Positions 6,110 to 42,010 of a stretch of DNA of 64,000 nt are shown piece after piece; positions within the stretch are counted from its first letter, which is position 1, and every line of letters begins with the position of its first letter. The notes beneath the pieces are model-generated. The model made no database searches and was not told the origin of the DNA. It worked only from the letters and a program-made list of their open reading frames with translations. The position numbers and the translations under genes were made by a program. The DNA comes from Macrostomum lignano (lineage: Eukaryota), in NCBI GenBank assembly GCA_002269645.1, contig NIVC01003228.1, forward strand, positions 1 through 64,000, read 5' to 3'.

Positions 6110-6182
6110 TAGGTAGGTAGGCAGGCAGGCAGGCAGGCAGGCAGGTAGGTAGGCAAGCAGGCAGGTAGGCAGGCAGGTAGGT
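5968..6182. repeat. (GGCA/GGTA)n microsatellite
   Basis: Direct inspection. Confidence 0.95.
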
Positions 6183-7044: not shown

Positions 7045-8992
7045 CAACAGAAGCGGAACAGCAGAAGAACAGCGGAAGCAGAACAGCAGAAGCAGAACAG
7101 CAGAGCAGAACAGCAGAACAGCAGAAGCAGAACAGCAGAAGAACAGCACAAGCAGAACAGCAGAAGAACAGCACAAGCAGAACAGAAGCAGATCAGCAGA
7201 AGCAGAACAGCAGAAGAACAGCAGAACAGCAGAAGCAGAACAGCAGAAGAACAGCAGAAGCAGAACAGCAGAAGAACAGCAGAAGCAGAACAGCAGAAGA
7301 ACAGCAGAAGCAGAACAGCAGAAGAACAGCACAAGCAGAACAGAAGCAGAGCAGCAGAAGCAGAACAGCAGAAGAACAGCGGAAGCAGAACAGCAGAAGA
7401 ACAGCAGAAGCAGAACAGCAGAAGAACAGCAGAAGCAGAAGAACAGCACAAGCAGAACAGAAGCAGAGCAGCAGAAGCAGAACAGCAGAAGAACAGCAGA
7501 AGCAGAACAGAAGCAGAGCAGCAGAAGCAGAACAGCAGAACAGCACAAGCAGAACAGCAGAAGAACAGCACAAGCAGAACAGCAGAACAGCACAAGCAGA
7601 ACAGAAGCAGAGCAGCAGAAGCAGAACAGCAGAACAGCAGAAGCAGAACAGCAGAAGCAGAACAGCAGAAGCAGAACAGCAGAAGAACAGCAGAAGAACA
7701 GCGGAAGCAGAACAGCAGAAGAACAGCAGAAGCAGAACAGCAGAAGAACAGCAGAAGCAGAACAGCAGAAGAACAGCACAAGCAGAACAGAAGCAGAGCA
7801 GCAGAAGCAGAACAGCAGAAGAACAGCGGAAGCAGAACAGCAGAAGAACAGCAGAAGCAGAACAGCAGAAGAACAGCAAGAGCAGAAGAACAGCACAAGC
7901 AGAACAGAAGCAGAGCAGCAGAAGCAGAACAGCAGAAGAACAGCACAAGCAGAACAGAAGCAGAGCAGCAGAAGCAGAACAGCAGAAGAACAGCAGAAGC
8001 AGAACAGCAGAAGAACAGCACAAGCAGAACAGCAGAACAGCACAAGCAGAACAGAAGCAGAGCAGCAGAAGCAGAACAGCAGAACAGCAGAAGCAGAACA
8101 GCAGAAGCAGAACAGCAGAAGCAGAACAGCAGAAGAACAGCAGAAGAACAGCGGAAGCAGAACAGCAGAAGCAGAACAGCAGAAGAACAGCAGAACAGCA
8201 GAAGCAGAACAGCAGAAGAACAGCAGAAGCAGAACAGAAGCAGAGCAGCAGAAGCAGAACAGCAGAAGCAGAACAACAGAAGCAGAACAGCAGAAGCAGA
8301 ACAGAAGCAGAGCAGCAGAAGAACAGCAGAACAGCAGAAGCAGAACAGCAGAAGAACAGCACAAGCAGAACATCAGAAGAACAGCAGAAGCAGAACAGCA
8401 GAAGAACAGCAGAAGCAGAACAGAAGCAGAGCAGCAGAAGCAGAACAGCAGAAGCAGAACAGCAGAAGCAGAACAGCAGAAGCAGAACAGAAGCAGAGCA
8501 GCAGAAGAACAGCAGAACAACAGAAGCAGAACAGCAGAAGAACAGCAGAAGCAGAACAGCAGAAGAACAGCAGAAGCAGAACAGCAGAAGAACAGCACAA
8601 GCAGAACAGAAGCAGAGCAGCAGAAGCAGAACAGCAGAAGAACAGCACAAGCAGAACAGCAGAACAGCACAAGCAGAACAGAAGCAGAGCAGCAGAAGCA
8701 GAACAGCAGAACAGCAGAAGCAGAACAGCAGAAGCAGAACAGCAGAAGCAGAAGCAGAACAGCAGAAGCAGAACAGCAGAAGAACAGCAGAAGAACAGCG
8801 GAAGCAGAACAGCAGAAGAACAGCAGAACAGCAGAAGAACAGCAGAACAGCAGAAGCAGAACAGCACAAGAACAGCAGAAGCAGAACAGCAGAAGCAGAA
8901 CAGCAGAAGCAGAACAGAAGCAGAGCAGCAGAAGCAGAACAGAAGCAGAGCAGCAGAAGCAGAACAGAAGCAGAGCAGCAGAAGCAGAACAG
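7045..8992. repeat. CAG/AAG-based compound minisatellite
   Basis: AGCAGAACAGCAGAAGAAC-type subunits over ~1.9 kb; produces spurious C/F/L/S ORFs. Confidence 0.95.
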
Positions 8993-9639
8993 GGATTTGT
9001 CCAACAGATGGCAAGCCGTTCACGCAGACGGGCAGACTCCAACAGGGGTTGGGTGATTCGGAGTTACTAGAATCAAAGCGCGCACAGACAATCACAAAAT
9101 GATCACAAAATGCGCTTACCATGGTAGCAAATGAATGCGGGGTACTTGCTTTACACGAGTCTGAAATAATTATTGCGCACACATAATATCACAACCTAAC
9201 ACTGACTAAATAGCTTTAGACGTACTATGGAATCTAACAGTGCATAAAATTGTATGAAAAACAAATAATAACGGCGCATACAATGCGATTAGCACTACTG
9301 CCGACAAGTAGCCAGACTAGCATCAGGCGGTGCAAAACAAAACCAGATACAGATAATTAGCAATCTTAGTAAAATACGCATTGAACGGGGGGTTGGATAG
9401 ATCTGTGGAAGAGCAACGGAAATTGAACAAGCTTTGCTGCAATAACAGCTGCGTCTGCTAGGGGCAGAAATCCTTAAATAATACATTGAAGTCATCTAGC
9501 ATAAGCAAAGCGAAGCAAACAGCTGAAAAAATTTCTGCAAAAATTAGAATTTTGAGTTTGATCCTGAAAACAGGATAGGGAGCGGAATGGTACAGAGGGC
9601 GGAATGGTACAGGCAGAATGGATATGATAGGGGTATCAG

Positions 9640-11590
9640 ATTGGTGAATGGGCATCAGATTGGTGAATGGGTATCAGATTGGTGAATGGGCATCAGATTG
9701 GTGAATGGGCATCAGATTCGTGAATGGGCATCAGATTGGTGAATGGGCATCAGATTGGTGAATGGGCATCAGATTCGTGAATGGGCATCAGATTGGTGAA
9801 TGGGCATCAGATTGGTGAATGGGCATCAGATTCGTGAATGGGCATCAGATTGGTGAATGGGCATCAGATTGGTGAATGGGCATCAGATTGGTGAATGGGC
9901 ATCAGATTGGTGAATGGGCATCAGATTCGTGAATGGGCATCAGATTGGTGAATGGGCATCAGCTTGGTGAATGGGCATCGAGTTGGTGAATGGGCATCAG
10001 ATTCGTGAATGGGCATCAGATTCGTGAATGGGCATCAGATTCGTGAATGGGCATCAGATTGGTGAATGGGCATCAGATTGGTGAATGGGCATCGGGTTGG
10101 TGAATGGGCATCAGATTGGTGAATGGGCATCAGATTCGTGAATGGGCATCAGATTGGTGAATGGGCATCAGATTGGTGAATGGGCATCAGATTGGTGAAT
10201 GGGCATCAGATTGGTGAATGGGCATCAGATTCGTGAATGGGCATCAGATTGGTGAATGGGCATCAGATTCGTGAATGGGCATCAGATTCGTGAATGGGCA
10301 TCGGGTTGGTGAATGGGCATCAGATTGGTGAATGGGCATCAGATTGGTGAATGGGCATCGGGTTGGTGAATGGGCATCAGATTGGTGAATGGGCATCAGA
10401 TTCGTGAATGGGCATCAGATTGGTGAATGGGCATCAGATTCGTGAATGGGCATCAGATTGGTGAATGGGCATCAGATTAGTGAATGGGCATCAGATTGGT
10501 GAATGGGCATCAGATTGGTGAATGGGCATCGGGTTGGTGAATAGGCATCAGATTGGTGAATGGGAATCGGGTTGGTGAATGGGCATCAGATTGGTGAATG
10601 GGCATCAGATTGGTGAATGGGCATCGGGTTGGTGAATGGGCATCAGATTGGTGAATGGGCATCAGATTGGTGAATGGGCATCAGATTGGTGAATGGGCAT
10701 CAGATTCGTGAATGGGCATCAGATTCGTGAATGGGCATCAGATTAGTGAATGGGCATCAGGTTGGTGAATGGGCATCGAGTTGGTGAATGGGCATCAGAT
10801 TCGTGAATGGGCATCAGATTGGTGAATGGGCATCAGATTGGTGAATGGGCATCAGATTGGTGAATGGGCATCAGATTGGTGAATGGGTATCAGATTGGTG
10901 AATGGGCATCAGATTCGTGAATGGGCATCAGATTGGTGAATGGGCATCGGGTCGGTGAATGGGCATCAGATTGGTGAATGGGCATCAGATTGGTGAATGG
11001 GCATCGGGTTGGTGAATGGGCATCAGATTGGTGAATGGGCATCAGATTCGTGAATAGGCATCAGATTGGTGAATGGGCATCAGATTGGTGAATGGGCATC
11101 AGATTGGTGAATGGGCATCAGATTCGTGAATGGGCATCAGATTGGTGAATGGGCATCAGATTAGTGAATGGGCATCAGATTGGTGAATGGGCATCAGATT
11201 GGTGAATGGGCATCGGGTTGGTGAATGGGCATCAGATTGGTGAATGGGCATCAGATTCGTGAATGGGCATCAGATTGGTGAATGGGCATCAGATTGGTGA
11301 ATGGGCATCGGGTTGGTGAATGGGCATCAGATTGGTGAATGGGCATCAGATTGGTGAATGGGCATCAGATTGGTGAATGGGCATCAGATTCGTGAATGGG
11401 CATCAGATTGGTGAATGGGCATCAGATTAGTGAATGGGCATCAGGTTGGTGAATGGGCATCGAGTTGGTGAATGGGCATCAGATTCGTGAATGGGCATCA
11501 GATTGGTGAATGGGCATCAGATTGGTGAATGGGCATCAGATTGGTGAATGGGCATCAGATTAGTGAATGGGCATCAGATTGGTGAATGGG
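9640..11590. repeat. 19-bp minisatellite, ~100 copies
   Basis: ATTGGTGAATGGGCATCAG in tandem; ends 5 bp from the DYRK stop codon. Confidence 0.97.
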
Positions 11591-11594
11591 AAAC

Positions 11595-19137
<7,543 letters not shown>

Positions 19138-20631: not shown

Positions 20632-21653
20632 CCAAGCATGATTGCAAATGGGATATAGAGTCAAATATATATTTAATGTACTATAATTATTAAATTAAGT
20701 TAACTGATCAGCTTGGTACAATTGGTACAATGTGCTATACATAAAAATCTATAGTTTATATTGGAGTTAGCACTTAGCAGATCTTTAAAAAATGAATGTT
20801 GCAATTTTTTATTTGAATTCTGTTTTCTGTTTTCTGAATTCTGTCCATCCATGAAATAAAACAAGCATGGATGGACGAAGGAACCTTTCAAAAAGTGATA
20901 ATGCTTGAAAGAAATGGTCAAAGGCAAATATTAGGTATATTAAAATATTACACCAAAAATATTCCATATTCTTAGCAATTGGGGGGCAATGCCTAGTAGG
21001 TCAATGTAAATAAGTTGAAAGGTTGAATACTCCAAACAGAATATGCAGAAATATCAAAATTCCACATATACTAAGCAGGGGTGTCGGAACTACTTTCAAA
21101 GTGGGGGGGCTCAATAAAAAAGGGCAGATCTGAGTTACTTCAATGCAAATCGAGGGGCAAAAATTTCAACTAATGTAAGTTCATTCATGCATTAAAAAGT
21201 AATTTAATTTCACAACAAAGTACAACCCATTACATATAGCTAATAAAACTCGTAAAATAACTATATATTTACTATTTAGTTGTGCATTTTAGTTTACACA
21301 ATGAGCAGACAGCGACAGCAGTTTAAAAAAAACAAAAATTTACAACTAATTGTACTGTACTTAGATACTCATAGAACTATACATGTATATGTAGTGGAGC
21401 AAATAAATTACTGATCATTAGAGCAATAGTTTATTGAAGTGTTGCAGGACGCAGGTATTGCATTGATTTGATGTTGACAGTACATGTAAGTTTATAGGAA
21501 TATGAAATGAACATTTGAATTTCAATTTGCTCCATTAAGCAAGTCACGTTCATATCAGATACTCGTAATGCAAAAATATATAGCAGTAGGTAGCCAGTAG
21601 TAGTAGCAAACTATGAAAACTGAATAAAAGTCAGTAGTCAGAAGCTCCAAATT

Positions 21654-24600
21654 TCACACTCTGCCAAAAAAAGTTTGCCGACGGCTGTTGCGACTTACAA
21701 ACTCGCGAACAGCTTGTGCGAGGTTCAGATTGTCAGTACGATTCTTATGCACATTAAGTAACATGAAGCTGTTGTATGTTTTGGCAGTCATAGTACTTCG
21801 CAAGTAATTCTTGATCCGTCGTTGGGCTGAAAATGACCTTTCTGCAGTGGCAGATGTCATTGGCACTACCAAGTAGACGTGCAGCATTGCAAGTACATCT
21901 CGAAAGAGCGGCTGGTGAATCTGTTCTCTTGTAAATATGTCATGCAGAGTTGTCAACCTTGAAATGAGCTTTACTTCAGGTGAACAACGCTTGACAAATC
22001 CATGCAGCAAACATAGCTGTGCTTGAAGATTGTCAGCATTCCAATCCACAGGATGGTACGCCATCAGTGATGCTGGAATAGAATTAGGTGCTGCTCCATT
22101 GGCCGCGTGAATAAGAAGCTTCTCCATGTCTTTAAGCACATTATATGCTTCCTGGTCAAATCTACTGTCTAGTTCGCGAACTAAAGCATCAATAGCGGTA
22201 TAATAATGCTGCCTGTAGTATTCTTTTACAGAGTTAGATTGATGCTGAAACGGATGCATTTTACTGCCTTCATGTTCGAGTCGTATTGGAGCCCTTCGTT
22301 CTCTTGGTAGCTTTTGTTCAATGCCGACTGCCTCTGCACCCTCGACTACTTCCTGAAACCGCTCTGAAAACATGCTTCGCTCACGCAAAAGTGCCTCTTT
22401 GAGGCAGTTTACTCCGGTGATAGTGGACTCTGCTGTGACACTAGTGCTTTGAAGAGTAATAGCCAGCTGCTCTGATAATGTAAAAATCACTCGCGCTGCG
22501 CAAATTCCAAAATAAACAGAGAACTTCATAAGGGATTTTTTCAGATCTTCTGCCTTTGATCGATTCTCTCCAGATGACTCACCAGCGATTTCGGCCAAGC
22601 AGTTAAGCAAGTGCTTGTAGCTGTGCAATACAGACGAAATTGCCTTACAACGAACACTCCATCGCGTTGGGCAGAGCATGTGAATACTGTAGCCCTGCTC
22701 TTCCTCAATAAAAAACGACTCATTCAAGGTATGAAATAGGTCAAAGCGCTTTGGAGAGGCTTTGATGAAGACAGCAGTCTCTTGTACAGTACTTAACGCG
22801 GTACTGATGACACTTGATTCTCGAGCGCACCTTTGAAGGGTCAGCTGCAGACAGTGGTTGGCACAATGAACACTCAATGCTAGTGGTTGTTCTTCTTTAA
22901 TGCGAGTTGCCGTGCCTGTCAGTCTACCACTCATACTTGCAGCACCATCATATGCTTGACCTCTTAGGTTGCTAAGCTTCAAGTTACAACGTGTTAGAAT
23001 GTCTTTTAAGGTTGAAGTAATAATTTCAGCTCCAGTTCCGCATAGTTCATGCATGCCAATGAAGTCTTCGTGCACTTGTAAATCTGGCTTTGAAACCCAC
23101 CGAATGCACACTGACATTTGTTCCTTGCAGCTTACGTCACGTGATTCATCAGCAATCAATGCGAATGTCGTTGACTTCTCACTAATGTCAAGTAACAAAC
23201 TTCGGAGAACCTGATGTGCCATGATTTCCATCATCTCTCCAATCACATCAACACTCAAGTACTTGGAATCCTTTAGCCAAGATTGCAGTTCAGGCACATC
23301 TTCAGACCTTAAAATAAGCAGCTGTCTAAGATTGCCTTCAATCTCCTTACTATTTCTTATTGCCATTCCTTGACGCATAAGATATCGCAACGAGCTAAAA
23401 ACCCGCTGCAGATTTTCCCGATTTTGTAATAGCTGTTGAGAATGAATAGCATCTAATTGTGCTCCTATTGTAGATTGTAATTTCAGTCGAGTGTACACCT
23501 TTTCGTAGGCTTCTTGGTGAAAATGACTGTTATTATGTTTCTTTAGCTTTTCAATTGCTTTCTTCCAGTCACAAAAGCCGCGAGAGGTGAATGTACTCTC
23601 TCCACAACTTCTTGATAGCTTCATGCCTGAGTTTACCGCAAAGCGACAATAAAAACAAAAAAGGGTGCCTTGAGATGAGCAGTATGTAAGCCAGTCAAAC
23701 TGCACAAACCATTGTAGTTGGCATGATCGACCTGCATTGCTGCTCCCACTCCCTCCTTGCTTGAAACCAGATATGGAATCAGGCCGATTTTGCAATGCAA
23801 TCTGGCAGCATCCGCAGTCTAACATTTCGCATGGATTAGATGTGCTAGTGCTAAGAATGGTATTTTTTGTTGCAGATACAACAGTCTCACCAACATCGGC
23901 ATTGGCAGCAGCGGCAGGGGCAGTAGGCTCTCTAGAGTCAGCATTGGCAGCGGCAGGGGCAGTAGAGTCAGCATTGGCAGCAGCGGCAGGGGCAGTAGAG
24001 TCAGCATTGGCAGCAGCGGCAGGGGCAGTAGAGTCAGCATTGGCAGCAGCGGCAGGGGCAGTAGAGTCAGCATTGGCAGCAGCGGCAGGGGCAGTAGAGT
24101 CAGCATTGGCAGCAGCGGCAGGGGCAGTAGAGTCAGCATTGGCAGCAGCGGCAGGGGCAGTAGAGTCAGCATTGGCAGCAGCGGCAGGGGCAGTAGAGTC
24201 AGCATTGGCAGCAGCGGCAGGGGCAGTAGAGTCAGCATTGGCAGCAGCGGCAGGGGCAGTAGTGTCAGCATTGGCAGCAGCGGCAGGGGCAGTAGAGTCA
24301 GCATTGGCAGCAGCGGCAGGGGCAGTAGAGTCAGCATTGGCAGCAGCGGCAGGGGCAGTAGAGTCAGCATTGGCAGCAGCGGCAGGGGCAGTAGAGTCAG
24401 CATTGGCAGCAGCGGCAGGGGCAGTAGAGTCAGCATTGGCAGCAGCGGCAGGGGCAGTAGAGTCAGCATTGGCAGCAGCGGCAGGGGCAGTAGAGTCAGC
24501 ATTGGCAGCAGCGGCAGGGGCAGTAGAGTCAGCATTGGCAGCAGCGGCAGGGGCAGTAGAGTCAGCATTGGCAGCAGCGGCAGGGGCAGTAGAGTCAGCA

Positions 24601-25035
24601 TTGGCAGCAGCGGCAGGGGCAGTAGAGTCAGCATTGGCAGCAGCGGCAGGGGCAGTAAGCTCTCTCGAGTCAGCATTGGCAGCAGCGGCAGGGGCAGTAA
24701 GCTCTCTCGAGTCAGCATTGGCAGCAGCGGCAGGGGCAGTAAGCTCTCTCGAGTCAGCATTGGCAGCAGCGGCAGGGGCAGTAAGCTCTCTCGAGTCAGC
24801 TTTAGTAGCAGCAGCTGTGCCAGATGGAGCATTCGAGTTAGCTTCAATAGGAGAAACAAGCCTAAAAAACAGCAATTAACAAGCAGCATACGAGCGTACA
24901 GCTTAATATCAACACAGTATCATATCTTCATACATTTAGATTACGTACTTACCAGTTAGTCATTTTCCTTGACTTTTTGGCTGCCTGTTTCATATCCTCT
25001 TCATGTTGTTTCTTTCTCCTTTTAGCCGTTGGCAT
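21654..25035 (-). CDS. hAT transposase (ZMYM1-like: TTF-type Zn finger, DUF4371-type core, hAT C-terminal dimerisation domain), ~1096 aa, 2 exons
   Basis: Exon 1 is 25035-24953 (MPTAKRRKK..., NLS-like), followed by a 91-nt GT-AG intron and exon 2 at 24861-21654; phases match. Motifs: WFVQFDWL..FCFYC, ADESRD, AYDGAASM, HCANH (CxxH), TRW, TAERSFS..RRIKNYLRSTM. Confidence 0.93.
23890..24800. repeat. 33/42-bp in-frame minisatellite inside the transposase
   Basis: Encodes roughly 26 copies of ADSTAPAAAAN / ADSRELTAPAAAAN. Confidence 0.95.
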
Positions 25036-26273
25036 TTTATTTTAGATTGTATTTTTCTGAAACTGATAGGTCTGTACGGCTCTGAATTTTCCCTGAAGGC
25101 TCTGAAGCCAAGCTTTTAAGCCCAGCCCAATACCAGGTGTAGTGATTCGTATAGTATTTTTTATTTAAAAGCTTTAAACACTGTCTGTCTTTCTCAGATC
25201 CCAGTAAAGTTGCTTATTTACCCACTGTCTTATTATTTCGTCCTCAGTGGACTCCCCACATTCCCCGCTCTCCACTGACCACTGGCAAGATTCATGAATG
25301 TACTGTCTATGTACATCTACGTGGGGCCCTTGCCGGTCCACTGTAGGGGGCAGGGTCAGAATCTCTGGAGTGGAGAGGGGGCAGGACAGGAAAGGAAAAC
25401 TTGAGTGCAGTCCAGTCAAGATTTAGCAATAAACAAGAGACAGAAAGGAAGGATAAGGAGTAGCGGACACTAAGCACTGTACATTCAAATCAAAGTGAAT
25501 GGTTTAACTTTAATGGATTTGGGGGTCTTGGCCCTACTTGGGTTGTGCTTATTGGGGGCAACTAAGGTCCTAGGACACAGGGCACTTAGAAAATTTACCG
25601 GGGCACTTTAAAATTTTAAAAGGGCACTTTTAAGGGTCTTTCAAAAAGTGGGGGGGCTCCAGCCCCCCCGTGCCCCCCCGGTTCCGACACCCCTGATACT
25701 AAGCGTCACAACAAATCTGTTTAGATACTAAACGCCTAAACTACTAAACTAAATTGATTGTTTCATTAATCATTAGTACGCAGACTACGCAGTATTGAGA
25801 TATAGACTCGATATTCCCGAAAGCAAAAACTTAAACCTAACCACGATAATATTGAAAGCGATAAAACAAGTTAGTTGTCTTTAACAAGCACTTTGCGCAA
25901 AAATACAGTCGTGTTTGATTGATTTCCCAATTATACTCAATTTAACTGACACAGTAAATATAAAGAATCAATTCAATTAAAAATTAAAAACGCAGTAAAC
26001 TGGAAATTGTGTTTGAGTTTTTACTTGATGATGGCCAGAGCACTGAAATTTTCTACTCAAACACGAGCCAAAAAATCCATGGAAAACGAATGTACTAAAA
26101 AAACTGAAAAATATAGACCTTAAGGCACTAACTGAAGATAAACTTTCCCAAAGCTTTAATAAAAAGAGAAATACCTAGTGCAAAGGCACCTGAAGATACA
26201 CAGAGAAATAGAACTTAGCCAAAAGCTAGAGAATCAGCAACATATTAAATTCTACACAAACGCCTATCTCTAT

Positions 26274-26580
26274 AAAAAAATCCGCAGGCCCGACCTTTCA
26301 GATTACTTTCCAGGCATATTTTGCAGTGGTTTGCGGTATTTTGCGATAGCTTTAATAGGATCGCTGTCTGTACGCTCAGAGGGCGCCTGAGGGATACCGT
26401 CAGAGCACCTTGGTACAGGTATAGGCCTGCCTTCCTATACAGCGACCCACAGCCCTTCCCGATCCACTATTACCCTCCAACCCAGCCTACTCACTCATTA
26501 CAAGCTTTCAGCCAGGCAGAGACAAGTTTCACAGGCGTACTGCGGTTAGGCGTCTCTATGCGAGACAAAACCGACACGGC
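26274..26580 (-). ncRNA. Candidate ~300-nt structured RNA of unknown family placed behind the SL-RNA promoter
   Basis: Starts exactly one array period (1152 bp) from the SL +1. Shares the SL upstream region and first 9 nt (GCCGTGTCG), then diverges. Several clean stems, GC-richer than the left flank, ends in T7. Family not recognised. Confidence 0.4.
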
Positions 26581-27139
26581 AATGAGACGAGCTGGAACCC
26601 GCTCTCACTCAGTGCACAGCTCTCCGTTGGAGCCTCCAGCCCTAGGGCAAATTATTTTGTTGAACTTTATCTACTCCAAGTAAGTTTTGCCGACTAGTGC
26701 AGCACTATTTTGCACTACAGCTTGAAAAGAGCTGCGCGAAAAAGTCTTTCTTTCTTTTAGCCGACATGTTTAGAAAGTGTGCACACAAAGGCGCCGCCTA
26801 ATTGATTGATTGATTGATTGCTATAAATCAAGTAAAATTCCCATGTGAGAGATGGAGATACTCGTAAAACTATTAATACACAGTACATATAACATAGCGT
26901 TACCGCGTGCAAATGCAAAGTGCGCATAGAAAATAATGAAACGCGAATCGAATCCCTTGCTTGACTTGATAGAGTCGAGTGGAGTGGAACTCGAAAGGAA
27001 TCAGCAGACCTATGGTAAAAATTCAAGCAGCATCCAGTTGGCGGGCGCGGGCGGATTGGTGGGCCTGGGCCTAAGTATTAATGCATGCAGCAGCTGGAGT
27101 TAGTTGATGAGCGCGCGGCATGCAGTTAAAGAGGCAAAA

Positions 27140-27259
27140 AAGACAACAGCATTTGGTATTCCCAGGCGGTCACCCATCCAAGTACTAATCAAACCCAACG
27201 TTGCTTAACTTCGGTGATCAGACGAGAACCGGTGTTTTCAACGTGGTATGGCCGTTGCC
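27140..27259 (-). rRNA. 5S: 5S rRNA, copy 1
   Basis: GGCAACGGCCATACCACGTTGAAAACACCGGTTCTCGTCTGATCACCGAAGTTAAGC...TAGTACTTGGATGGGTGACCGCCTGGGAATAC...; 120 nt, A and C boxes, T6 terminator. Confidence 0.98.
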
Positions 27260-27615
27260 ACTGGCTGATAGGAGCTGAGCTCATAATTAACCTGAACCTG
27301 CAGCTACATGTATACGGACCATACGGTACGGATCAACTGTGGGCCTCTCGTCTATACTCCAATTAATATATAATTCATTGTTGGCGCCATCAACAAAGTT
27401 GTACATGTACATATGCACATCCGCATGCATAGAGCGATCTAAGAAATTACATTTGATTATTGCAACTCGAAGAGATAGCCTGCACTGTACACCGCGATGC
27501 ATATGCGCGCTATATGATGCTACATATGCTATGGTGCAACAACTAATTTTACAACTTAAATCCAGAATTACAATTAACCAACTATAATTAGTTAATGTTG
27601 TCTTTGGCTTTGTTA

Positions 27616-27732
27616 GGCAGCCGCGGTAGCGCGGCTTGTCAAAAATTATTGAGTAGATCGCTCAATTGGATCCACGCGGTGTCTTACCATGCAAAATTAA
27701 GAGTCTTCGCAGTAAGAGACCGTCGACACGGC
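27616..27732 (-). ncRNA. Spliced-leader (SL) RNA, copy 1
   Basis: 45-nt leader GCCGTGTCGACGGTCTCTTACTGCGAAGACTCTTAATTTTGCATG ends in ATG (typical of flatworm SLs). It is followed by donor GTAAGAC paired in a stem, a second stem TGGATC/GATCTA, Sm site AATTTTTG and a 3' hairpin GCCGCG-CTAC-CGCGGC. The 3' end is approximate. Confidence 0.92.
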
Positions 27733-28291
27733 AAAGAGACGAGCTGGAACCCGCTCTCACTCAGTGCACAGCTCTCCGTTGGAGCCTCGAGCCCTAGGGC
27801 AAATTATTTTGTTGAACTTTATCTACTCCAAGTAAGTTTTGCCGACTAGTGCAGCACTATTTTGCACTACAGCTTGAAAAGAGCTGCGCGAAAAAGTCTT
27901 TCTTTCTTTTAGCCGACATGTTTAGAAAGTGTGCACACAAAGGCGCCGCCTAATTGATTGATTGATTGATTGCTATAAATCAAGTAAAATTCCCATGTGA
28001 GAGATGGAGATACTCGTAAAACTATTAATACACAGTACATATAACATAGCGTTACCGCGTGCAAATGCAAAGTGCGCATAGAAAATAATGAAACGCGAAT
28101 CGAATCCCTTGCTTGACTTGATAGAGTCGAGTGGAGTGGAACTCGAAAGGAATCAGCAGACCTATGGTAAAAATTCAAGCAGCATCCAGTTGGCGGGCGC
28201 GGGCGGATTGGTGGGCCTGGGCCTAAGTATTAATGCATGCAGCAGCTGGAGTTAGTTGATGAGCGCGCGGCATGCAGTTAAAGAGGCAAAA

Positions 28292-28411
28292 AAGACAACA
28301 GCATTTGGTATTCCCAGGCGGTCACCCATCCAAGTACTAATCAAACCCAACGTTGCTTAACTTCGGTGATCAGACGAGAACCGGTGTTTTCAACGTGGTA
28401 TGGCCGTTGCC
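28292..28411 (-). rRNA. 5S: 5S rRNA, copy 2
   Basis: Same as copy 1. Confidence 0.98.
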
Positions 28412-28767
28412 ACTGGTTGATAGGAGCTGAGCTCATAATTAACCTGAACCTGCAGCTACATGTATACGGACCATACGGTACGGATCAACTGTGGGCCTCT
28501 CGTCTATACTCCAATTAATATATAATTCATTGTTGGCGCCATCAACAAAGTTGTACATGTACATATGCACATCCGCATGCATAGAGCGATCTAAGAAATT
28601 ACATTTGATTATTGCAACTCGAAGAGATAGCCTGCACTGTACACCGCGATGCATATGCGCGCTATATGATGCTATATATGCTATGGTGCAACAACTAATT
28701 TTACAACTTAAATCCAGAATTACAATTAACCAACTATAATTAGTTAATGTTGTCTTTGGCTTTGTTA

Positions 28768-28884
28768 GGCAGCCGCGGTAGCGCGGCTTGTCACAAATTA
28801 TTGAGTAGATCGCTCAATTGGATCCACGCGGTGTCTTACCATGCAAAATTAAGAGTCTTCGCAGTAAGAGACCGTCGACACGGC
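28768..28884 (-). ncRNA. SL RNA, copy 2 (Sm-site variant AATTTGTG)
   Basis: As copy 1 except an a>c change at 28794. Confidence 0.9.
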
Positions 28885-29443
28885 AAAGAGACGAGCTGGA
28901 ACCCGCTCTCACTCAGTGCACAGCTCTCCGTTGGAGCCTCGAGCCCTAGGGCAAATTATTTTGTTGAACTTTATCTACTCCAAGTAAGTTTTGCCGACTA
29001 GTGCAGCACTATTTTGCACTACAGCTTGAAAAGAGCTGCGCGAAAAAGTCTTTCTTTCTTTTAGCCGACATGTTTAGAAAGTGTGCACACAAAGGCGCCG
29101 CCTAATTGATTGATTGATTGATTGCTATAAATCAAGTAAAATTCCCATGTGAGAGATGGAGATACTCGTAAAACTATTAATACACAGTACATATAACATA
29201 GCGTTACCGCGTGCAAATGCAAAGTGCGCATAGAAAATAATGAAACGCGAATCGAATCCCTTGCTTGACTTGATAGAGTCGAGTGGAGTGGAACTCGAAA
29301 GGAATCAGCAGACCTATGGTAAAAATTCAAGCAGCATCCAGTTGGCGGGCGCGGGCGGATTGGTGGGCCTGGGCCTAAGTATTAATGCATGCAGCAGCTG
29401 GAGTTAGTTGATGAGCGCGCGGCATGCAGTTAAAGAGGCAAAA

Positions 29444-29563
29444 AAGACAACAGCATTTGGTATTCCCAGGCGGTCACCCATCCAAGTACTAATCAAACCC
29501 AACGTTGCTTAACTTCGGTGATCAGACGAGAACCGGTGTTTTCAACGTGGTATGGCCGTTGCC
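29444..29563 (-). rRNA. 5S: 5S rRNA, copy 3
   Basis: Same as copy 1. Confidence 0.98.
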
Positions 29564-29919
29564 ACTGGCTGATAGGAGCTGAGCTCATAATTAACCTGAA
29601 CCTGCAGCTACATGTATACGGACCATACGGTACGGATCAACTGTGGGCCTCTCGTCTATACTCCAATTAATATATAATTCATTGTTGGCGCCATCAACAA
29701 AGTTGTACATGTACATATGCACATCCGCATGCATAGAGCGATCTAAGAAATTACATTTGATTATTGCAACTCGAAGAGATAGCCTGCACTGTACACCGCG
29801 ATGCATATGCGCGCTATATGATGCTATATATGCTATGGTGCAACAACTAATTTTACAACTTAAATCCAGAATTACAATTAACCAACTATAATTAGTTAAT
29901 GTTGTCTTTGGCTTTGTTA

Positions 29920-30036
29920 GGCAGCCGCGGTAGCGCGGCTTGTCAAAAATTATTGAGTAGATCGCTCAATTGGATCCACGCGGTGTCTTACCATGCAAAA
30001 TTAAGAGTCTTCGCAGTAAGAGACCGTCGACACGGC
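29920..30036 (-). ncRNA. SL RNA, copy 3
   Basis: Same as copy 1. Confidence 0.92.
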
Positions 30037-30595
30037 AAAGAGACGAGCTGGAACCCGCTCTCACTCAGTGCACAGCTCTCCGTTGGAGCCTCGAGCCCTA
30101 GGGCAAATTATTTTGTTGAACTTTATCTACTCCAAGTAAGTTTTGCCGACTAGTGCAGCACTATTTTGCACTACAGCTTGAAAAGAGCTGCGCGAAAAAG
30201 TCTTTCTTTCTTTTAGCCGACATGTTTAGAAAGTGTGCACACAAAGGCGCCGCCTAATTGATTGATTGATTGATTGCTATAAATCAAGTAAAATTCCCAT
30301 GTGAGAGATGGAGATACTCGTAAAACTATTAATACACAGTACATATAACATAGCGTTACCGCGTGCAAATGCAAAGTGCGCATAGAAAATAATGAAACGC
30401 GAATCGAATCCCTTGCTTGACTTGATAGAGTCGAGTGGAGTGGAACTCGAAAGGAATCAGCAGACCTATGGTAAAAATTCAAGCAGCATCCAGTTGGCGG
30501 GCGCGGGCGGATTGGTGGGCCTGGGCCTAAGTATTAATGCATGCAGCAGCTGGAGTTAGTTGATGAGCGCGCGGCATGCAGTTAAAGAGGCAAAA

Positions 30596-30715
30596 AAGAC
30601 AACAGCATTTGGTATTCCCAGGCGGTCACCCATCCAAGTACTAATCAAACCCAACGTTGCTTAACTTCGGTGATCAGACGAGAACCGGTGTTTTCAACGT
30701 GGTATGGCCGTTGCC
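30596..30715 (-). rRNA. 5S: 5S rRNA, copy 4
   Basis: Same as copy 1. Confidence 0.98.
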
Positions 30716-31071
30716 ACTGGCTGATAGGAGCTGAGCTCATAATTAACCTGAACCTGCAGCTACATGTATACGGACCATACGGTACGGATCAACTGTGGGC
30801 CTCTCGTCTATACTCCAATTAATATATAATTCATTGTTGGCGCCATCAACAAAGTTGTACATGTACATATGCACATCCGCATGCATAGAGCGATCTAAGA
30901 AATTACATTTGATTATTGCAACTCGAAGAGATAGCCTGCACTGTACACCGCGATGCATATGCGCGCTATATGATGCTACATATGCTATGGTGCAACAACT
31001 AATTTTACAACTTAAATCCAGAATTACAATTAACCAACTATAATTAGTTAATGTTGTCTTTGGCTTTGTTA

Positions 31072-31188
31072 GGCAGCCGCGGTAGCGCGGCTTGTCAAAA
31101 ATTATTGAGTAGATCGCTCAATTGGATCCACGCGGTGTCTTACCATGCAAAATTAAGAGTCTTCGCAGTAAGAGACCGTCGACACGGC
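31072..31188 (-). ncRNA. SL RNA, copy 4
   Basis: Same as copy 1. Confidence 0.92.
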
Positions 31189-31747
31189 AAAGAGACGAGC
31201 TGGAACCCGCTCTCACTCAGTGCACAGCTCTCCGTTGGAGCCTCGAGCCCTAGGGCAAATTATTTTGTTGAACTTTATCTACTCCAAGTAAGTTTTGCCG
31301 ACTAGTGCAGCACTATTTTGCACTACAGCTTGAAAAGAGCTGCGCGAAAAAGTCTTTCTTTCTTTTAGCCGACATGTTTAGAAAGTGTGCACACAAAGGC
31401 GCCGCCTAATTGATTGATTGATTGATTGCTATAAATCAAGTAAAATTCCCATGTGAGAGATGGAGATACTCGTAAAACTATTAATACACAGTACATATAA
31501 CATAGCGTTACCGCGTGCAAATGCAAAGTGCGCATAGAAAATAATGAAACGCGAATCGAATCCCTTGCTTGACTTGATAGAGTCGAGTGGAGTGGAACTC
31601 GAAAGGAATCAGCAGACCTATGGTAAAAATTCAAGCAGCATCCAGTTGGCGGGCGCGGGCGGATTGGTGGGCCTGGGCCTAAGTATTAATGCATGCAGCA
31701 GCTGGAGTTAGTTGATGAGCGCGCGGCATGCAGTTAAAGAGGCAAAA

Positions 31748-31867
31748 AAGACAACAGCATTTGGTATTCCCAGGCGGTCACCCATCCAAGTACTAATCAA
31801 ACCCAACGTTGCTTAACTTCGGTGATCAGACGAGAACCGGTGTTTTCAACGTGGTATGGCCGTTGCC
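31748..31867 (-). rRNA. 5S: 5S rRNA, copy 5
   Basis: Same as copy 1. Confidence 0.98.
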
Positions 31868-32223
31868 ACTGGCTGATAGGAGCTGAGCTCATAATTAACC
31901 TGAACCTGCAGCTACATGTATACGGACCATACGGTACGGATCAACTGTGGGCCTCTCGTCTATACTCCAATTAATATATAATTCATTGTTGGCGCCATCA
32001 ACAAAGTTGTACATGTACATATGCACATCCGCATGCATAGAGCGATCTAAGAAATTACATTTGATTATTGCAACTCGAAGAGATAGCCTGCACTGTACAC
32101 CGCGATGCATATGCGCGCTATATGATGCTACATATGCTATGGTGCAACAACTAATTTTACAACTTAAATCCAGAATTACAATTAACCAACTATAATTAGT
32201 TAATGTTGTCTTTGGCTTTGTTA

Positions 32224-32340
32224 GGCAGCCGCGGTAGCGCGGCTTGTCAAAAATTATTGAGTAGATCGCTCAATTGGATCCACGCGGTGTCTTACCATGC
32301 AAAATTAAGAGTCTTCGCAGTAAGAGACCGTCGACACGGC
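32224..32340 (-). ncRNA. SL RNA, copy 5
   Basis: Same as copy 1. Confidence 0.92.
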
Positions 32341-32899
32341 AAAGAGACGAGCTGGAACCCGCTCTCACTCAGTGCACAGCTCTCCGTTGGAGCCTCGAGC
32401 CCTAGGGCAAATTATTTTGTTGAACTTTATCTACTCCAAGTAAGTTTTGCCGACTAGTGCAGCACTATTTTGCACTACAGCTTGAAAAGAGCTGCGCGAA
32501 AAAGTCTTTCTTTCTTTTAGCCGACATGTTTAGAAAGTGTGCACACAAAGGCGCCGCCTAATTGATTGATTGATTGATTGCTATAAATCAAGTAAAATTC
32601 CCATGTGAGAGATGGAGATACTCGTAAAACTATTAATACACAGTACATATAACATAGCGTTACCGCGTGCAAATGCAAAGTGCGCATAGAAAATAATGAA
32701 ACGCGAATCGAATCCCTTGCTTGACTTGATAGAGTCGAGTGGAGTGGAACTCGAAAGGAATCAGCAGACCTATGGTAAAAATTCAAGCAGCATCCAGTTG
32801 GCGGGCGCGGGCGGATTGGTGGGCCTGGGCCTAAGTATTAATGCATGCAGCAGCTGGAGTTAGTTGATGAGCGCGCGGCATGCAGTTAAAGAGGCAAAA

Positions 32900-33019
32900 A
32901 AGACAACAGCATTTGGTATTCCCAGGCGGTCACCCATCCAAGTACTAATCAAACCCAACGTTGCTTAACTTCGGTGATCAGACGAGAACCGGTGTTTTCA
33001 ACGTGGTATGGCCGTTGCC
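32900..33019 (-). rRNA. 5S: 5S rRNA, copy 6
   Basis: Same as copy 1. Confidence 0.98.
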
Positions 33020-33375
33020 ACTGGCTGATAGGAGCTGAGCTCATAATTAACCTGAACCTGCAGCTACATGTATACGGACCATACGGTACGGATCAACTGT
33101 GGGCCTCTCGTCTATACTCCAATTAATATATAATTCATTGTTGGCGCCATCAACAAAGTTGTACATGTACATATGCACATCCGCATGCATAGAGCGATCT
33201 AAGAAATTACATTTGATTATTGCAACTCGAAGAGATAGCCTGCACTGTACACCGCGATGCATATGCGCGCTATATGATGCTATATATGCTATGGTGCAAC
33301 AACTAATTTTACAACTTAAATCCAGAATTACAATTAACCAACTATAATTAGTTAATGTTGTCTTTGGCTTTGTTA

Positions 33376-33492
33376 GGCAGCCGCGGTAGCGCGGCTTGTC
33401 AAAAATTATTGAGTAGATCGCTCAATTGGATCCACGCGGTGTCTTACCATGCAAAATTAAGAGTCTTCGCAGTAAGAGACCGTCGACACGGC
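33376..33492 (-). ncRNA. SL RNA, copy 6
   Basis: Same as copy 1. Confidence 0.92.
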
Positions 33493-34051
33493 AAAGAGAC
33501 GAGCTGGAACCCGCTCTCACTCAGTGCACAGCTCTCCGTTGGAGCCTCGAGCCCTAGGGCAAATTATTTTGTTGAACTTTATCTACTCCAAGTAAGTTTT
33601 GCCGACTAGTGCAGCACTATTTTGCACTACAGCTTGAAAAGAGCTGCGCGAAAAAGTCTTTCTTTCTTTTAGCCGACATGTTTAGAAAGTGTGCACACAA
33701 AGGCGCCGCCTAATTGATTGATTGATTGATTGCTATAAATCAAGTAAAATTCCCATGTGAGAGATGGAGATACTCGTAAAACTATTAATACACAGTACAT
33801 ATAACATAGCGTTACCGCGTGCAAATGCAAAGTGCGCATAGAAAATAATGAAACGCGAATCGAATCCCTTGCTTGACTTGATAGAGTCGAGTGGAGTGGA
33901 ACTCGAAAGGAATCAGCAGACCTATGGTAAAAATTCAAGCAGCATCCAGTTGGCGGGCGCGGGCGGATTGGTGGGCCTGGGCCTAAGTATTAATGCATGC
34001 AGCAGCTGGAGTTAGTTGATGAGCGCGCGGCATGCAGTTAAAGAGGCAAAA

Positions 34052-34171
34052 AAGACAACAGCATTTGGTATTCCCAGGCGGTCACCCATCCAAGTACTAA
34101 CCAAACCCAACGTTGCTTAACTTCGGTGATCAGACGAGAACCGGTGTTTTCAATGTGGTATGGCCGTGGCC
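34052..34171 (-). rRNA. 5S: 5S rRNA, copy 7 (variant class)
   Basis: Three substitutions relative to copies 1-6: A4C, G18A, A71G. Confidence 0.96.
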
Positions 34172-34527
34172 ACTGGCTGATAGGAGCTGAGCTCATAATT
34201 AACCTGAACCTGCAGCTACATGTATACGGACCATACGGTACGGATCAATTGTTGGCCTCTCGTCTATACTCCAATTAATATATAATTCATTGTTGGCGCC
34301 ATCAACAAAGTTGTACATGTACATATGCACATCCGCATGCATAGAGCGATCTAAGAAATTACATTTGATTATTGCAACTCGAAGAGATAGCCTGCACTGT
34401 ACACCGCGATGCATATGCGCGCTATATGATGCTATATATGCTATGGTGCAACAACTAATTTTACAACTTAAATCCAGAATTACAATTAACCAACTATAAT
34501 TAGTTAATGTTGTCTTTGGCTTTGTTA

Positions 34528-34644
34528 GGCAGCCGCGGTAGCGCGGCTTGTCAAAAATTATTGAGTAGATCGCTCAATTGGATCCACGCGGTGTCTTACC
34601 ATGCAAAATTAAGAGTCTTCGCAGTAAGAGACCGTCGACACGGC
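34528..34644 (-). ncRNA. SL RNA, copy 7
   Basis: Same as copy 1. Confidence 0.92.
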
Positions 34645-35203
34645 AAAGAGACGAGCTGGAACCCGCTCTCACTCAGTGCACAGCTCTCCGTTGGAGCCTC
34701 GAGCCCTAGGGCAAATTATTTTGTTGAACTTTATCTACTCCAAGTAAGTTTTGCCGACTAGTGCAGCACTATTTTGCACTACAGCTTGAAAAGAGCTGCG
34801 CGAAAAAGTCTTTCTTTCTTTTAGCCGACATGTTTAGAAAGTGTGCACACAAAGGCGCCGCCTAATTGATTGATTGATTGATTGCTATAAATCAAGTAAA
34901 ATTCCCATGTGAGAGATGGAGATACTCGTAAAACTATTAATACACAGTACATATAACATAGCGTTACCGCGTGCAAATGCAAAGTGCGCATAGAAAATAA
35001 TGAAACGCGAATCGAATCCCTTGCTTGACTTGATAGAGTCGAGTGGAGTGGAACTCGAAAGGAATCAGCAGACCTATGGTAAAAATTCAAGCAGCATCCA
35101 GTTGGCGGGCGCGGGCGGATTGGTGGGCCTGGGCCTAAGTATTAATGCATGCAGCAGCTGGAGTTAGTTGATGAGCGCGCGGCATGCAGTTAAAGAGGCA
35201 AAA

Positions 35204-35323
35204 AAGACAACAGCATTTGGTATTCCCAGGCGGTCACCCATCCAAGTACTAACCAAACCCAACGTTGCTTAACTTCGGTGATCAGACGAGAACCGGTGTT
35301 TTCAATGTGGTATGGCCGTGGCC
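35204..35323 (-). rRNA. 5S: 5S rRNA, copy 8 (variant class)
   Basis: Same three substitutions as copy 7. Confidence 0.96.
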
Positions 35324-35800
35324 ACTGGCTGATAGGAGCTGAGCTCATAATTAACCTGAACCTGCAGCTACATGTATACGGACCATACGGTACGGATCAA
35401 TTGTTGGCCTCTCGTCTATACTCCAATGAATATATAATTAGTAATGCGGACGGATTACCGCGCTCGTAGTATATAGTAACTATAGTGGTGATTTGCAGTC
35501 AAGTCAAAGTCAACCTAACTAGCTCAACGCAAACAGTAACGCGTAGTCCAGTTTGACTCTATAATTCATTGTTGGCGCCATCAACAAAGTTGTACATATG
35601 CACATCCGCATGCATAGAGCGATCTAAGAAATTACATTTGATTATTGCAACTCGAAGAGATAGCCTGCACTGTACACCGCGATGCATATGCGCGCTATAT
35701 GATGCTATATGTGCTATGGTGCAACAACTAATTTTACAACTTAAATCCAGAATTACAATTAACCAACTATAATTAGTTAATGTTGTCTTTGGCTTTGTTA

Positions 35801-35824
35801 GGCAGCCGCGGTAGCGCGGCTTGT
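35801..35824 (-). pseudogene. Truncated SL RNA remnant (3' hairpin only) at the array edge
   Basis: GGCAGCCGCGGTAGCGCGGCTTGT, then array homology stops before the Sm site. Confidence 0.85.
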
Positions 35825-35863
35825 TAAACGTGTGTTTGTTTTACCAACGAATACATAAGGCAC

Positions 35864-36361
35864 ATGACACAACTCCTTGTTCATTTTTCCAGACGTGTGG
35901 ACATCCGTGGCGTCATTGACACGGTGGAGGAACCATCACCTATCATTACGAAACAAGGGAAGAAGGTTCATCGTGCCCGGTTAACCATTATTGATAATTC
36001 TGCTGCCTCCGTCTCCCTCATATTCTGGGGATCGTCCTCCGACCGGATAAATCAGTATCAGCACGGAGAATGCCTCGCCTTCATGAGAGGAGTGCTACAA
36101 GAGTACCCGGCTGGTACATTGCAAGTTGATTGTACTCATGCTCGAATACAGAAGCTGCAAGAGTATGAGGCAACCCAGCTGGACAATTGTGTGCGAGAAG
36201 CCAAACTACTGGGCACTAACTTCGAAGTCGCTTCGGTCTCACAGATAGAGACAACAGACCTTGCTAACTCGACTCAGCATACGCCAATCCGGTCAAGTCT
36301 CTATGCAAGTATTCAACCCGGAGGTGACAAGTTACACGTCGAGTTTAAGTTTGGCTCTTAA
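35864..36361 (+). CDS. RPA70-like OB-fold (ssDNA-binding) exon, probably transposon (Helitron-like) cargo
   Basis: VDIRGVIDTVEEPSPIITKQGKKVHRARLTIIDNSAASVSLIFWG resembles the RPA1 DBD-B pattern (VD..GV......I..K.G......L.L.D.S...V.LT.WG); likely acceptor TTTTTCCAG at 35892; 5' part not seen. Confidence 0.65.
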   Translation: MTQLLVHFSRRVDIRGVIDTVEEPSPIITKQGKKVHRARLTIIDNSAASVSLIFWGSSSDRINQYQHGECLAFMRGVLQEYPAGTLQVDCTHARIQKLQEYEATQLDNCVREAKLLGTNFEVASVSQIETTDLANSTQHTPIRSSLYASIQPGGDKLHVEFKFGS

Positions 36362-37728: not shown

Positions 37729-38455
37729 CACGTTTAAAAGCAAACCGTTTGACCAATTTTCTCCATTTTTTTACCAACTTGTAGGAAATTCAACAGAGAT
37801 GGTATGATTAGTGTTAGTCTAGACAAATTGACAAGTCAAGTCATAATTGCAAGCGAAAAGAGGTGAGGAAACGATAGCCCATAGGCAAACCTGTTTATTG
37901 ATAATAAGCGTACGGTAGGGCAGGTGCAACGATAATATTCAATCAATAATATTTGGGGTTAAAAGCATGCACAAATGTGCAAGTACAAATCTGAATATGA
38001 TAGGGCATAGAAATAGCGCACGAAGTAAACGAGAGAGAGAAAGAGACAAGTGCGGCATGCACTCACTGAGCAAAGCTACAAACACAAACCCAACAATTAG
38101 TTTTTGGTATGTTTTCGTCAATGTTAAGTACCTGTAAAAGGTTAAAAACAGGTGTTTTCCCTATCTAATCCAATGTATTTTCTTCTAAGTTAGAAAGTTA
38201 TATAGTCTATGGCTGATGCATGCTGTTTATAACGAAAATCTGGGCGTATGCAAATTTCGCCTAAAATTCCTAAGATTAGAGGAGAAAGTATGATGTATTT
38301 TTAAATGGTAAAGAGCTTTCTTTAAAAAGGTATTTCTCTATCTAATCTATTCTTAATAGTCTACGGCTGATGCTGCTTTTTAAAGAATTTTATATACATA
38401 GGATCCTATTCTAGAGTTCCTTTTTACGTACTACTACCCTTAATCTCATCATTAG

Positions 38456-39068
38456 TTCCCATCAATAATACTTGCAAACACATTGCTGCCCTGCGCAGAA
38501 AGCGAAAGAGCACACTTCAGAGAAATCGTGAAGCGAAAGATAAGAGAATAAATGAATCGGATGCTTCTCGGCAGGAACGTCTGGAGTCGGGTCGTGAGCG
38601 AGAGGCGCTGCGTCGTTTTGCTGCTGAGCGTAGAGAATGTTTACGAACAGTTTCAACCAGTTTAAGTAATCCAGTTTCCAGTACTCAAGTAGCTCCCGTT
38701 CCTGGTGATGGAAACTGCTTTTTTCACGCTATCACCCACCAGCTCCAAGGTACTGAGCTTCAATCATGCCCATCTACTAAGCGTCAATTGTTTGCCGAAC
38801 GTTTGGCATTGTTACTTCAAGACTACCCTGAAATTGTTGCATCATACGAGACGACAGTGGAACAAATTGTGGCTGAAACTCGTTCTGACGGTGTGTATGT
38901 GCATGATTTAGTTTCGACGTTCATACATCGTGTTCTTAATGTCAATTATGAGATCTATCAGCGAGATGATGTCAACCGCAAAACGCTTCGCTTGATTCAG
39001 ACAGGGCACGAATCTAAGAATTGAAGTTCCGCTTCACATTACGCATATATGCGTTCGGAGGGGCAACT
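38456..39068 (+). pseudogene. Exon with a SWIM-like CKH motif, an Arg/Glu-rich helical repeat and an OTU-like cysteine protease; internal stop
   Basis: One frame (largely missed by the ORF track) reads PINNTCKHIAALRRKRK...NESDASRQERLESGREREALRRFAAE...VPGDGNCFFHAITHQL...KN*SSASHY. TGA at 39022-39024 precedes the OTU His. AG/GT boundaries at 38455/39069; further small exons follow (e.g. 39160-39201). Confidence 0.7.
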
Positions 39069-40661: not shown

Positions 40662-42010
40662 ATGGGGGCACCACAGGTTGTGCACTTAATAAATTATCAG
40701 CATCTTCCGGTTGACAGTCTCAATGGATTCACACGCGAGGAGTTGGATCTCGTTACCGAGTTGTCCGGGATCGACTGCCGTAGGGACGAATTAGTGAGCG
40801 ATTTCATCTCCTTCATTGAACGCTCTCTGGGCGAAGATGTGTCAGCTATTCCTATTCCCGACCTACCAGCCGATTTCGATCAAGAACTCAAAGAGCTAGA
40901 CGACGCAGAAATTGCTGGTCTTCCTGCGAGTAGTCGTAAGCAGATGGTTGAGCATGGAGAAAGGCTGGTTGCATTCTCGAACAGCCGTGGTTTAAACGCC
41001 AATCTAGGTAACGTTGATGACGCCACTCTGAATCACTACCTGCGCATCTATTATTTTCAACTAAAGACAAAGGAAGGCCGCGCTTATTCACCTTCTTCGC
41101 TAGTTTGCTTTCGTGCTGGAATACAACGATACTTGAATATTGTAGTGAAACGCAGGACCAACTGAGTTGCTAGCGGAACTCCTTTCGACGGTTCCAATCG
41201 CATGTTACAGTACAAAGTCCGGGAATACATTCAGTCTGGACAATCTACACAGAGCTTCGATCCAATTGAAGAAGGCGATATGTTGACGCTTCGGGCTTTT
41301 TTCGATCGCAGTGACGCTGAGTGGCTACAATACGAAGTTATGTTTGAGTTGCTATACCAATTGGGCGAGCGTGGTCAGGAACATTTAAAGTAATTTCTGA
41401 CGAAGAAGCCTCTGATTCGCCGCGTCGATGCGGATGGCAGATCCTACGCTTGTCTGCCTCTGCTACCGTCCAAGAACCGCCGAGCTGAACTGGACTCTGC
41501 TGCAGTAGCAGACAATAAACACGCAAGGATGTATGACGCCAAACTTCTGGATTTGTACGAGGCATCAATTCCTACGAATTGTGAATCGTTTTTACCGCGG
41601 CCGATAAAGTCTACGTCGGAGAAAAAGTTTTATTTCTCAACGAATGCGCGTCGCGGATACAGATTTCTGCAAGAATTTATGTCCAATCTTTCTGAGAAGG
41701 CCTAGCTAAGCAAACGATACACGAATCACTGCATCAGGTAATCTTGAACTACGATAAAATAGTACTACAGAATAATAATAGTAGGAGTAAGCAAAAATAA
41801 CGGTACTAAATATATTTGCATTAAAAAACGATTTCTTTCCAGAGTGACGCGAATTTGTGACCTGGATTCTTGTGGTCAAAGTGTTCACGACATTATGCTA
41901 GTAGCTGCATGGGCACAAATCAGTCTACAGTGCGACGAGATTTACACAAAAGACGCGACCGAAGTCTCTACAAGTCTGCTCAATGTGTTCAAGCCGCTAT
42001 GAAGCGTGAG
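40662..42010 (+). pseudogene. Crypton-type (DUF3504-like) tyrosine recombinase, decayed, with one intron
   Basis: LNHYLRIYYFQLKTKEGRAYSPSSLVCFRAGIQRYL, LGERGQE (catalytic R), YTNHCIR (HxxR) split by a GT-AG intron at 41738-41842, then IMLV..GHK in a shifted frame; in-frame stops at 41163, 41391 and 41703. Confidence 0.8.

Follow-up and report, generated by a model that had tools for sequence, protein, structure and literature searches.

The segment of ~300 nt downstream of the last spliced-leader (SL) promoter in an array of 5S rRNA and SL RNA genes most probably represents a truncated SL pseudogene that terminates a relocated array fragment and passes into unrelated flanking DNA, and any transcript arising from it would be incidental. 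An earlier note on the same window (the whole 64-kb stretch of DNA analysed here) had offered two readings of this segment: a distinct structured ncRNA of ~300 nt co-regulated with SL, or a chimera formed by promoter capture at the array edge. Family search, folding statistics, end-formation signals and homology all fail to support the former. The latter fits the breaks at +9 and at the far edge, the transposon-rich setting and the private promoter substitutions described below, with promoter capture itself being putative. The array block and its two edges are made up as follows:

26572..35824, minus strand: 5S rRNA/SL RNA tandem array block of 9253 bp, delimited by Rfam 5S matches, SL +1 positions, unit comparison and edge alignment.
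26581..26708, minus strand: upstream (promoter) region of SL, final copy; two private substitutions set it apart from the otherwise identical units.
26572..26580, minus strand: retained SL 5' end, first 9 nt GCCGTGTCG, where homology to the other units ends.
35801..35824, minus strand: 3' fragment of an SL gene (+94 to +117) next to unrelated DNA, located by edge alignment.

Within the block, eight full-length 5S genes on the minus strand (109-115 bits in Rfam) alternate with SL genes at a constant period of 1152, the arrangement that characterises a 5S/SL tandem array. Seven of the SL genes are intact, with +1 positions from 27732 to 34644, and the eighth slot has its +1 at 26580. Between-unit differences amount to 0-7 positions per unit. 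The SL gene occupies 117 nt of the 1152-nt unit; when intact, it reads GCCGTGTCGACGGTCTCTTACTGCGAAGACTCTTAATTTTGCATG|GTAAG..., with an Sm-type site AATTTTTGA and a terminal hairpin GCCGCG/CGCGGC. The start site assumed by the earlier note is reasonable, since the published M. cliftonense SL likewise starts GCCGT (exon GCCGTAAAGACGG...GCATG; supplement of PMC10468722). In the first (edge) unit, a 127-bp insertion (35440-35566) and a nearby 6-bp deletion are found in the spacer upstream of its 5S, and the 5S of this unit and the next one score slightly lower than the others (108.9 vs 114.7 bits).

SL and U1 genes are often dispersed within 5S rDNA arrays (PMC4233971) and a 5S-SL1 cluster of C. 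elegans is described in the literature, so that the array itself, of a type known from other phyla, is ordinary; for macrostomids, the literature searched held no report of 5S-SL linkage. As in nematode 5S-SL1-type arrays, each short unit, here of 1152 bp and nearly identical from copy to copy, pairs a Pol III gene (5S) with one of the Pol II snRNA type (SL). Unlike those arrays, the present one is a short block of eight units, both ends of which are broken in the SL gene, amid transposons and satellites, and it is not necessarily the main 5S/SL array of the genome. Two Macrostomum-type contigs emerged when metagenomes were scanned with the conserved SL core: L002 (Ga0302322_100095745), which has a genomic SL gene, and L001, which represents a trans-spliced mRNA; neither contains anything resembling the candidate. 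The SL gene of L002 (615-725), whose exon is identical to the M. cliftonense SL, is solitary, with no 5S visible by eye in its flanks (0.6 kb upstream, 2.4 kb downstream). Thus, SL-5S linkage is not universal in the genus.

Both edges of the block lie inside the 117-nt SL gene, one at +9 and the other at +94, so that SL +10 to +93 (84 nt) is missing. At the far edge, homology starts at 35824 with ACAAGCCGCGCTACCGCGGCTGCC, which is SL +94 onward, and is preceded by unrelated DNA. The earlier note had stated that the remainder of the broken SL gene is not found further left. This is correct, but the note had missed the fragment of its 3' end at the opposite edge, and this fragment changes the interpretation of the eighth slot. 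The length of the block is fully accounted for by eight units of 1152 bp plus the 127-bp insertion, less the 6-bp deletion of the first unit and the 84 nt of SL. If the two edges were independent, the probability of both falling in the SL gene would be ~0.01; against this, a random linear fragment would have breakpoints as close as 84 of 1152 in unit coordinates in ~15% of cases. A single break in one SL gene explains both edges. Simple in-situ tandem duplication was considered and excluded, because the internal junctions hold a complete, functional-looking SL gene and such a duplication cannot yield both edges. A search for target-site duplications at the array junctions yielded only an imperfect CGTTT/CGGTTTT resemblance. 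Array-free copies of the adjoining RPA-like element, which might have revealed an "empty site", were sought and no homologues were found.

That both ends are broken in the SL gene and that 84 nt are missing suggests a single break of an array fragment, followed by integration. The mechanism, like the lack of function, is inferred. A block of eight 5S/SL units would have been broken inside an SL gene, with one end keeping SL +94 onward (35824) and the other keeping the SL promoter and +1 to +9 (26572-26580). The array fragment, linear or circular, would have been broken once, with loss of ~84 nt of the broken SL gene, and fused with foreign DNA on either side, amid transposon- and satellite-rich DNA. 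If the block is such a fragment, then the 298 nt past the break would simply be DNA flanking the place of integration or rearrangement, a GC-richer patch with an ordinary palindrome, then T-run-rich, AT-rich DNA. Should the last promoter still fire, its product would be an incidental chimeric read-through rather than a dedicated structured RNA.

The DNA on either side of the array contains the following:

21076..25695, minus strand: intact hAT transposon with TIRs, TSD and DUF4371 plus hAT dimerisation domains, 580 bp beyond the candidate, delimiting its left flank.
35828..36358, plus strand: RPA-like OB-fold ORF fragment (Pfam REPA_OB_2, E = 3.6e-11), directly abutting the far array edge.
38371-39021, plus strand: OTU-like cysteine-protease ORF, 2.5 kb beyond the far array edge.

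The hAT element has perfect 15-bp TIRs CAGGGGTGTCGGAAC and a perfect 8-bp TSD ATACTAAG. Its transposase ORF spans 1073 codons, with both domains identified in Pfam, and a 33-bp (11-aa) tandem repeat at 23933-24783 enlarges the N-terminal part of this ORF. On the other side of the array, the RPA-like ORF has no homologue among 5.8-billion protein clusters. The combination of RPA-like OB and OTU occurs in some Helitron-type elements; no Rep/helicase ORF is present in the window. A 167-aa ORF at 40662-41165 (plus strand) shows a weak match to the QRICH1 domain (E = 4e-4, below the Pfam cut-off), and an interstitial block of degenerate TTAGGG telomere-type repeats is observed at 44685-44843. Distinct mini- and microsatellite arrays, ranging in period from 3 to 304 bp and in many cases longer than 1 kb, reach extreme density at 1-19000 and 43000-63500, which suggests a heterochromatic or subtelomeric setting.

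The last promoter copy is what lends the segment the appearance of a gene. As the earlier note had seen, the SL upstream region is almost unchanged in the final unit and the first 9 transcribed nt are kept, and unit comparison bears this out. The break thus spares the whole promoter and the start site, and transcription into the flank may be possible. This counts against the relocated-fragment explanation and in favour of another, which we consider distinctly unlikely: that the segment is a genuine new ncRNA gene created by promoter capture, producing a stable RNA of ~220-300 nt with its own structure and function, co-regulated with SL RNA. The promoter carries two substitutions, at -3 (26583, T>A) and -57 (26637, C>G), which are the sole private changes of that unit. 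Both are within 57 bp of the break, at positions where the seven intact copies are invariant and which are conserved between the SL promoters of the window and of L002. The blocks common to these two promoters are AACAAAA, CC.TAG..CTCGA and CTCTTTGCCGT, and both private changes fall in such blocks; the candidate shares upstream motifs (AACAAAA, CTCGA, CTCTTTG) with an independent Macrostomum-type SL gene. Substitutions at conserved positions argue against a captured promoter in use, although the chance of both changes hitting conserved sites is p ~0.15, as ~40% of upstream positions are conserved. They are suggestive only, and fit an edge copy released from homogenisation or selection (relaxed constraint). 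The indels of the first unit fit the escape of edge copies from homogenisation likewise.

No TATA-like element is present upstream, the region from -35 to -20 reading tgagtgagagcgggttccagc, which is not what a Pol III type-3 promoter would contain. SL RNAs are Pol II Sm-class transcripts. With no TATA and an SL promoter of the Pol II class, the T run at the end of the segment is not a terminator for this promoter and is irrelevant to the case for a captured gene. In Ascaris, the SL sequence itself is reportedly an intragenic promoter element; if flatworms use an element of this type, the loss of everything past +9 would hamper initiation as well.

Past the retained SL nucleotides, the segment comprises:

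26281..26571, minus strand: unique GC-richer flank, the proposed RNA body; GC 0.53, single copy in the window, no Rfam or Pfam match.
26274..26280, minus strand: T7 run, at the transition from GC-rich to AT-rich DNA.
26543..26573, minus strand: 5' hairpin CGGTT/AACCG enclosing GTCTC-GCATA-GAGAC; z = -2.6 for the 41-nt piece.
26358..26448, no strand assigned: domain of nested inverted repeats, with GGGTCGCTGT ... ACAGCGATCC around three smaller palindromes, assessed by folding against shuffles.

The earlier description of this segment as ~300 nt of unrelated GC-richer sequence ending in TTTTTTT before AT-rich DNA was confirmed by composition and by comparison with the rest of the window: the 298 nt after SL +9 have a GC content of 0.53 and terminate in T7, whereas GC drops to 0.32 over the following 578 nt. 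A compositionally distinct island of 300 nt that stops exactly at T7 runs counter to its being mere flank and favours a captured gene. Runs of at least seven T are rare across the window (11 in 54 kb). The T7 run also provides the run of at least four T expected at a Pol III terminator, at the 3' end of the putative RNA; T7 is nevertheless the first of a series, T runs being frequent in the adjoining AT-rich flank, where eight of at least five T occur on the candidate's strand in 578 nt (25696-26273).

A second copy of the 298 nt was not found in the 64-kb window. Neither did we find repeats common to both array flanks, or to the flanks and the rest of the window, and viral and prokaryote genome contigs, when scanned for exact patterns, gave no match. 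On the plus strand, a stop-free frame of 136 codons (26276-26683) runs antisense to the whole candidate and into the SL promoter, a length close to that expected by chance for such a GC content. Neither this frame nor the 120-aa antisense ORF over the candidate has a Pfam domain or a protein homologue, and an exact look-up of the 120-aa ORF in protein collections was empty. These observations bear on a sub-case of the relocated-fragment explanation, in which the 300 nt derive from some dispersed repeat or transposon next to the array. We regard it as a minor possibility: the surroundings are rich in transposons, the frame of 136 codons is open and the palindromic domain folds on both strands (see below), but the segment has neither a second copy in the window nor Pfam domains or protein homologues, and it lies outside the hAT element. 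Membership in that element was considered separately and rejected, as the element, bounded by a perfect TSD, stops at 25695.

We then turn to folding. The stems named in the earlier note are all present, at 26543-26573 and 26358-26448, but as evidence of a structured RNA they do not go beyond chance. The minimum free energy of the whole 307-nt segment is -100.8 kcal/mol, compared to -99.4 +/- 5.5 for dinucleotide shuffles (z = -0.23 to -0.26). Thus, the energy is no lower than that of shuffles, and the segment lacks the excess stability expected of a structured functional RNA. An uninterrupted helix of at least 10 bp (Watson-Crick plus G-U) forms in 159 of 200 shuffles, and a 10-bp helix is therefore expected by chance. 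Locally, two hairpin domains taken alone do beat their shuffles (z = -2.6 and -3.0), which counts for a captured gene and against mere flank. One is the 5' hairpin, the only local folding signal besides the palindrome domain, whose first two bases are SL-derived. The other is the palindrome window 26355-26450, for which z = -3.0 applies when the window is hand-picked; when shuffles are likewise scanned for their best 96-nt window, 9 of 150 attain the energy of the candidate's own (-40.9 kcal/mol), so that the signal is marginal and not significant after window choice. Nor is it strand-specific. The antisense strand of the palindrome window also beats its shuffles (z = -2.0), which points to an inverted repeat at the DNA level rather than a strand-specific RNA structure.

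Searches for known RNA families were carried out in Rfam on three nested ranges. The whole window at gathering thresholds gave nothing beyond 5S, and a 2.6-kb range at E<=10 gave the same result; 361 nt searched at E<=10 with the laxest filters produced two spurious bacterial matches only, of 15-16 bits. The earlier note had denied by eye any match to SRP, 7SK or RNase P/MRP, and the covariance-model search, which extended to U snRNAs, U3, vault, Y and telomerase RNAs among others, is likewise without a match. The candidate resembles the RNAs of ~300 nt (SRP/7SL, RNase P, RNase MRP, 7SK, U3) in length and in its T-run end, which is typical of the Pol III members, and differs from them in having neither a covariance-model match nor an upstream TATA box. 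RNase P was rejected individually: a CR-I-like string GGGAAGGGCUGUG is present, but there is no CR-V/P4 partner by eye and no covariance-model match, the CR-I-like and CR-V assignments following the consensus of these elements. A tRNA or SINE head was also rejected, ARAGORN having found nothing.

The eighth slot has in common with the intact SL genes only GCCGTGTCG (+1 to +9). From SL +10 onward, no residual similarity to the candidate was detected in local or global alignment (886 of 1000 and 1181 of 2000 shuffles score as well), and a diverged or extended SL gene was rejected on this basis. The M. lignano SL RNA has 109 nt and a three-hairpin architecture (PMC8629364). With Macrostomum SL RNA the candidate shares the 5' GCCGT start; it differs in consisting of +1 to +9 only, without exon core, donor, Sm site or terminal hairpin. 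No SL exon with a GU donor pairing back to the 5' end (stem-loop I) can be recognised, the partner GACACCGC being absent, and no Sm site of the AAUUUUUG type lies between two 3' hairpins within ~110 nt in total, the sole U run being the terminal T7. Non-functional SL loci have been described in parasitic flatworms (PMC12582326). Like SL-RNA pseudogenes or truncated end units at array boundaries, this end copy is incomplete and unlike the homogenised inner copies, and lacks donor and Sm site. The difference is that it is cut 9 nt past the start site, so that a complete promoter faces foreign DNA and mimics a new gene.

Could the candidate instead be an SL2-like RNA, a second and divergent spliced leader whose alternative exon ends GCA|GUACG at about +40? 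The first 9 nt are common to SL, a GUCUC...GAGAC hairpin is placed like the GUCU...AGAC of SL, and GUACG is found at +41. Nevertheless, this is highly improbable: alignment past +9 is not above shuffles, there is no intron segment to pair with the SL 5' end, no AUG precedes the putative donor, and both the Sm site and the three-hairpin ~110-nt architecture of the M. lignano SL RNA are lacking.

We also considered the long-sought telomerase RNA (TR) of flatworms, in which CCUAACC (26544-26550) would serve as template. No TR is known from flatworms to date (PMC8480181), which leaves room for such a proposal, TTAGGG repeats are present in the window, and the candidate contains a 7-nt match to a permutation of the template. 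Yet these 7 nt, the longest match to any CCCTAA permutation, amount to one repeat plus a single alignment base, and such a 7-mer is expected ~0.1 times per 300 nt. CCTAACC sits within the predicted closing stem of the 5' hairpin, whereas animal TRs have a single-stranded template of at least ~8 nt (1.3-1.8 repeats), which the candidate does not offer. Finally, neither a pseudoknot nor an H/ACA domain is seen by eye, and known animal TRs all have them (PMC8480181). Together, these points make a telomerase RNA barely conceivable here.

The case for promoter capture thus comes down to the bare adjacency of promoter and segment, the island of distinct composition and two local hairpins of modest strength, and we hold it to be improbable. 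One further resemblance might be added in its favour: ATTAAAG, past the largest stem, loosely recalls the sequence downstream of the SL terminal hairpin. Similarity to the SL 3' flank, however, equals the shuffle mean (the flatworm 3' box being undefined), there is no Sm site, no Rfam family matches, whole-segment folding is unremarkable at z = -0.26, and the far edge shows that the block is a broken fragment. In its fuller form, the SL promoter would drive a lineage-specific snRNA-class transcript of ~220-300 nt, with a functional 5' hairpin and a 3' multibranch domain (26358-26448), co-expressed with the trans-splicing machinery and, at the extreme, serving as the flatworm telomerase RNA; to this we give a slimmer chance still. 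If true, flatworms would have a new class of ncRNA under the SL promoter, and the birth of a gene through promoter capture would be cleanly exemplified. The explanation as a truncated SL pseudogene bordering a relocated fragment agrees with the sharp loss of homology at +9, the two breakpoints, the lack of a family match and of excess structure, and the transposon context.

The locus documents 5S-SL gene linkage in this macrostomid-like genome. It also presents a short array block apparently relocated into transposon-rich DNA, with both ends broken within one SL gene. Its value is in part cautionary, as an array edge that falls just past a transcription start site can mimic a novel gene.
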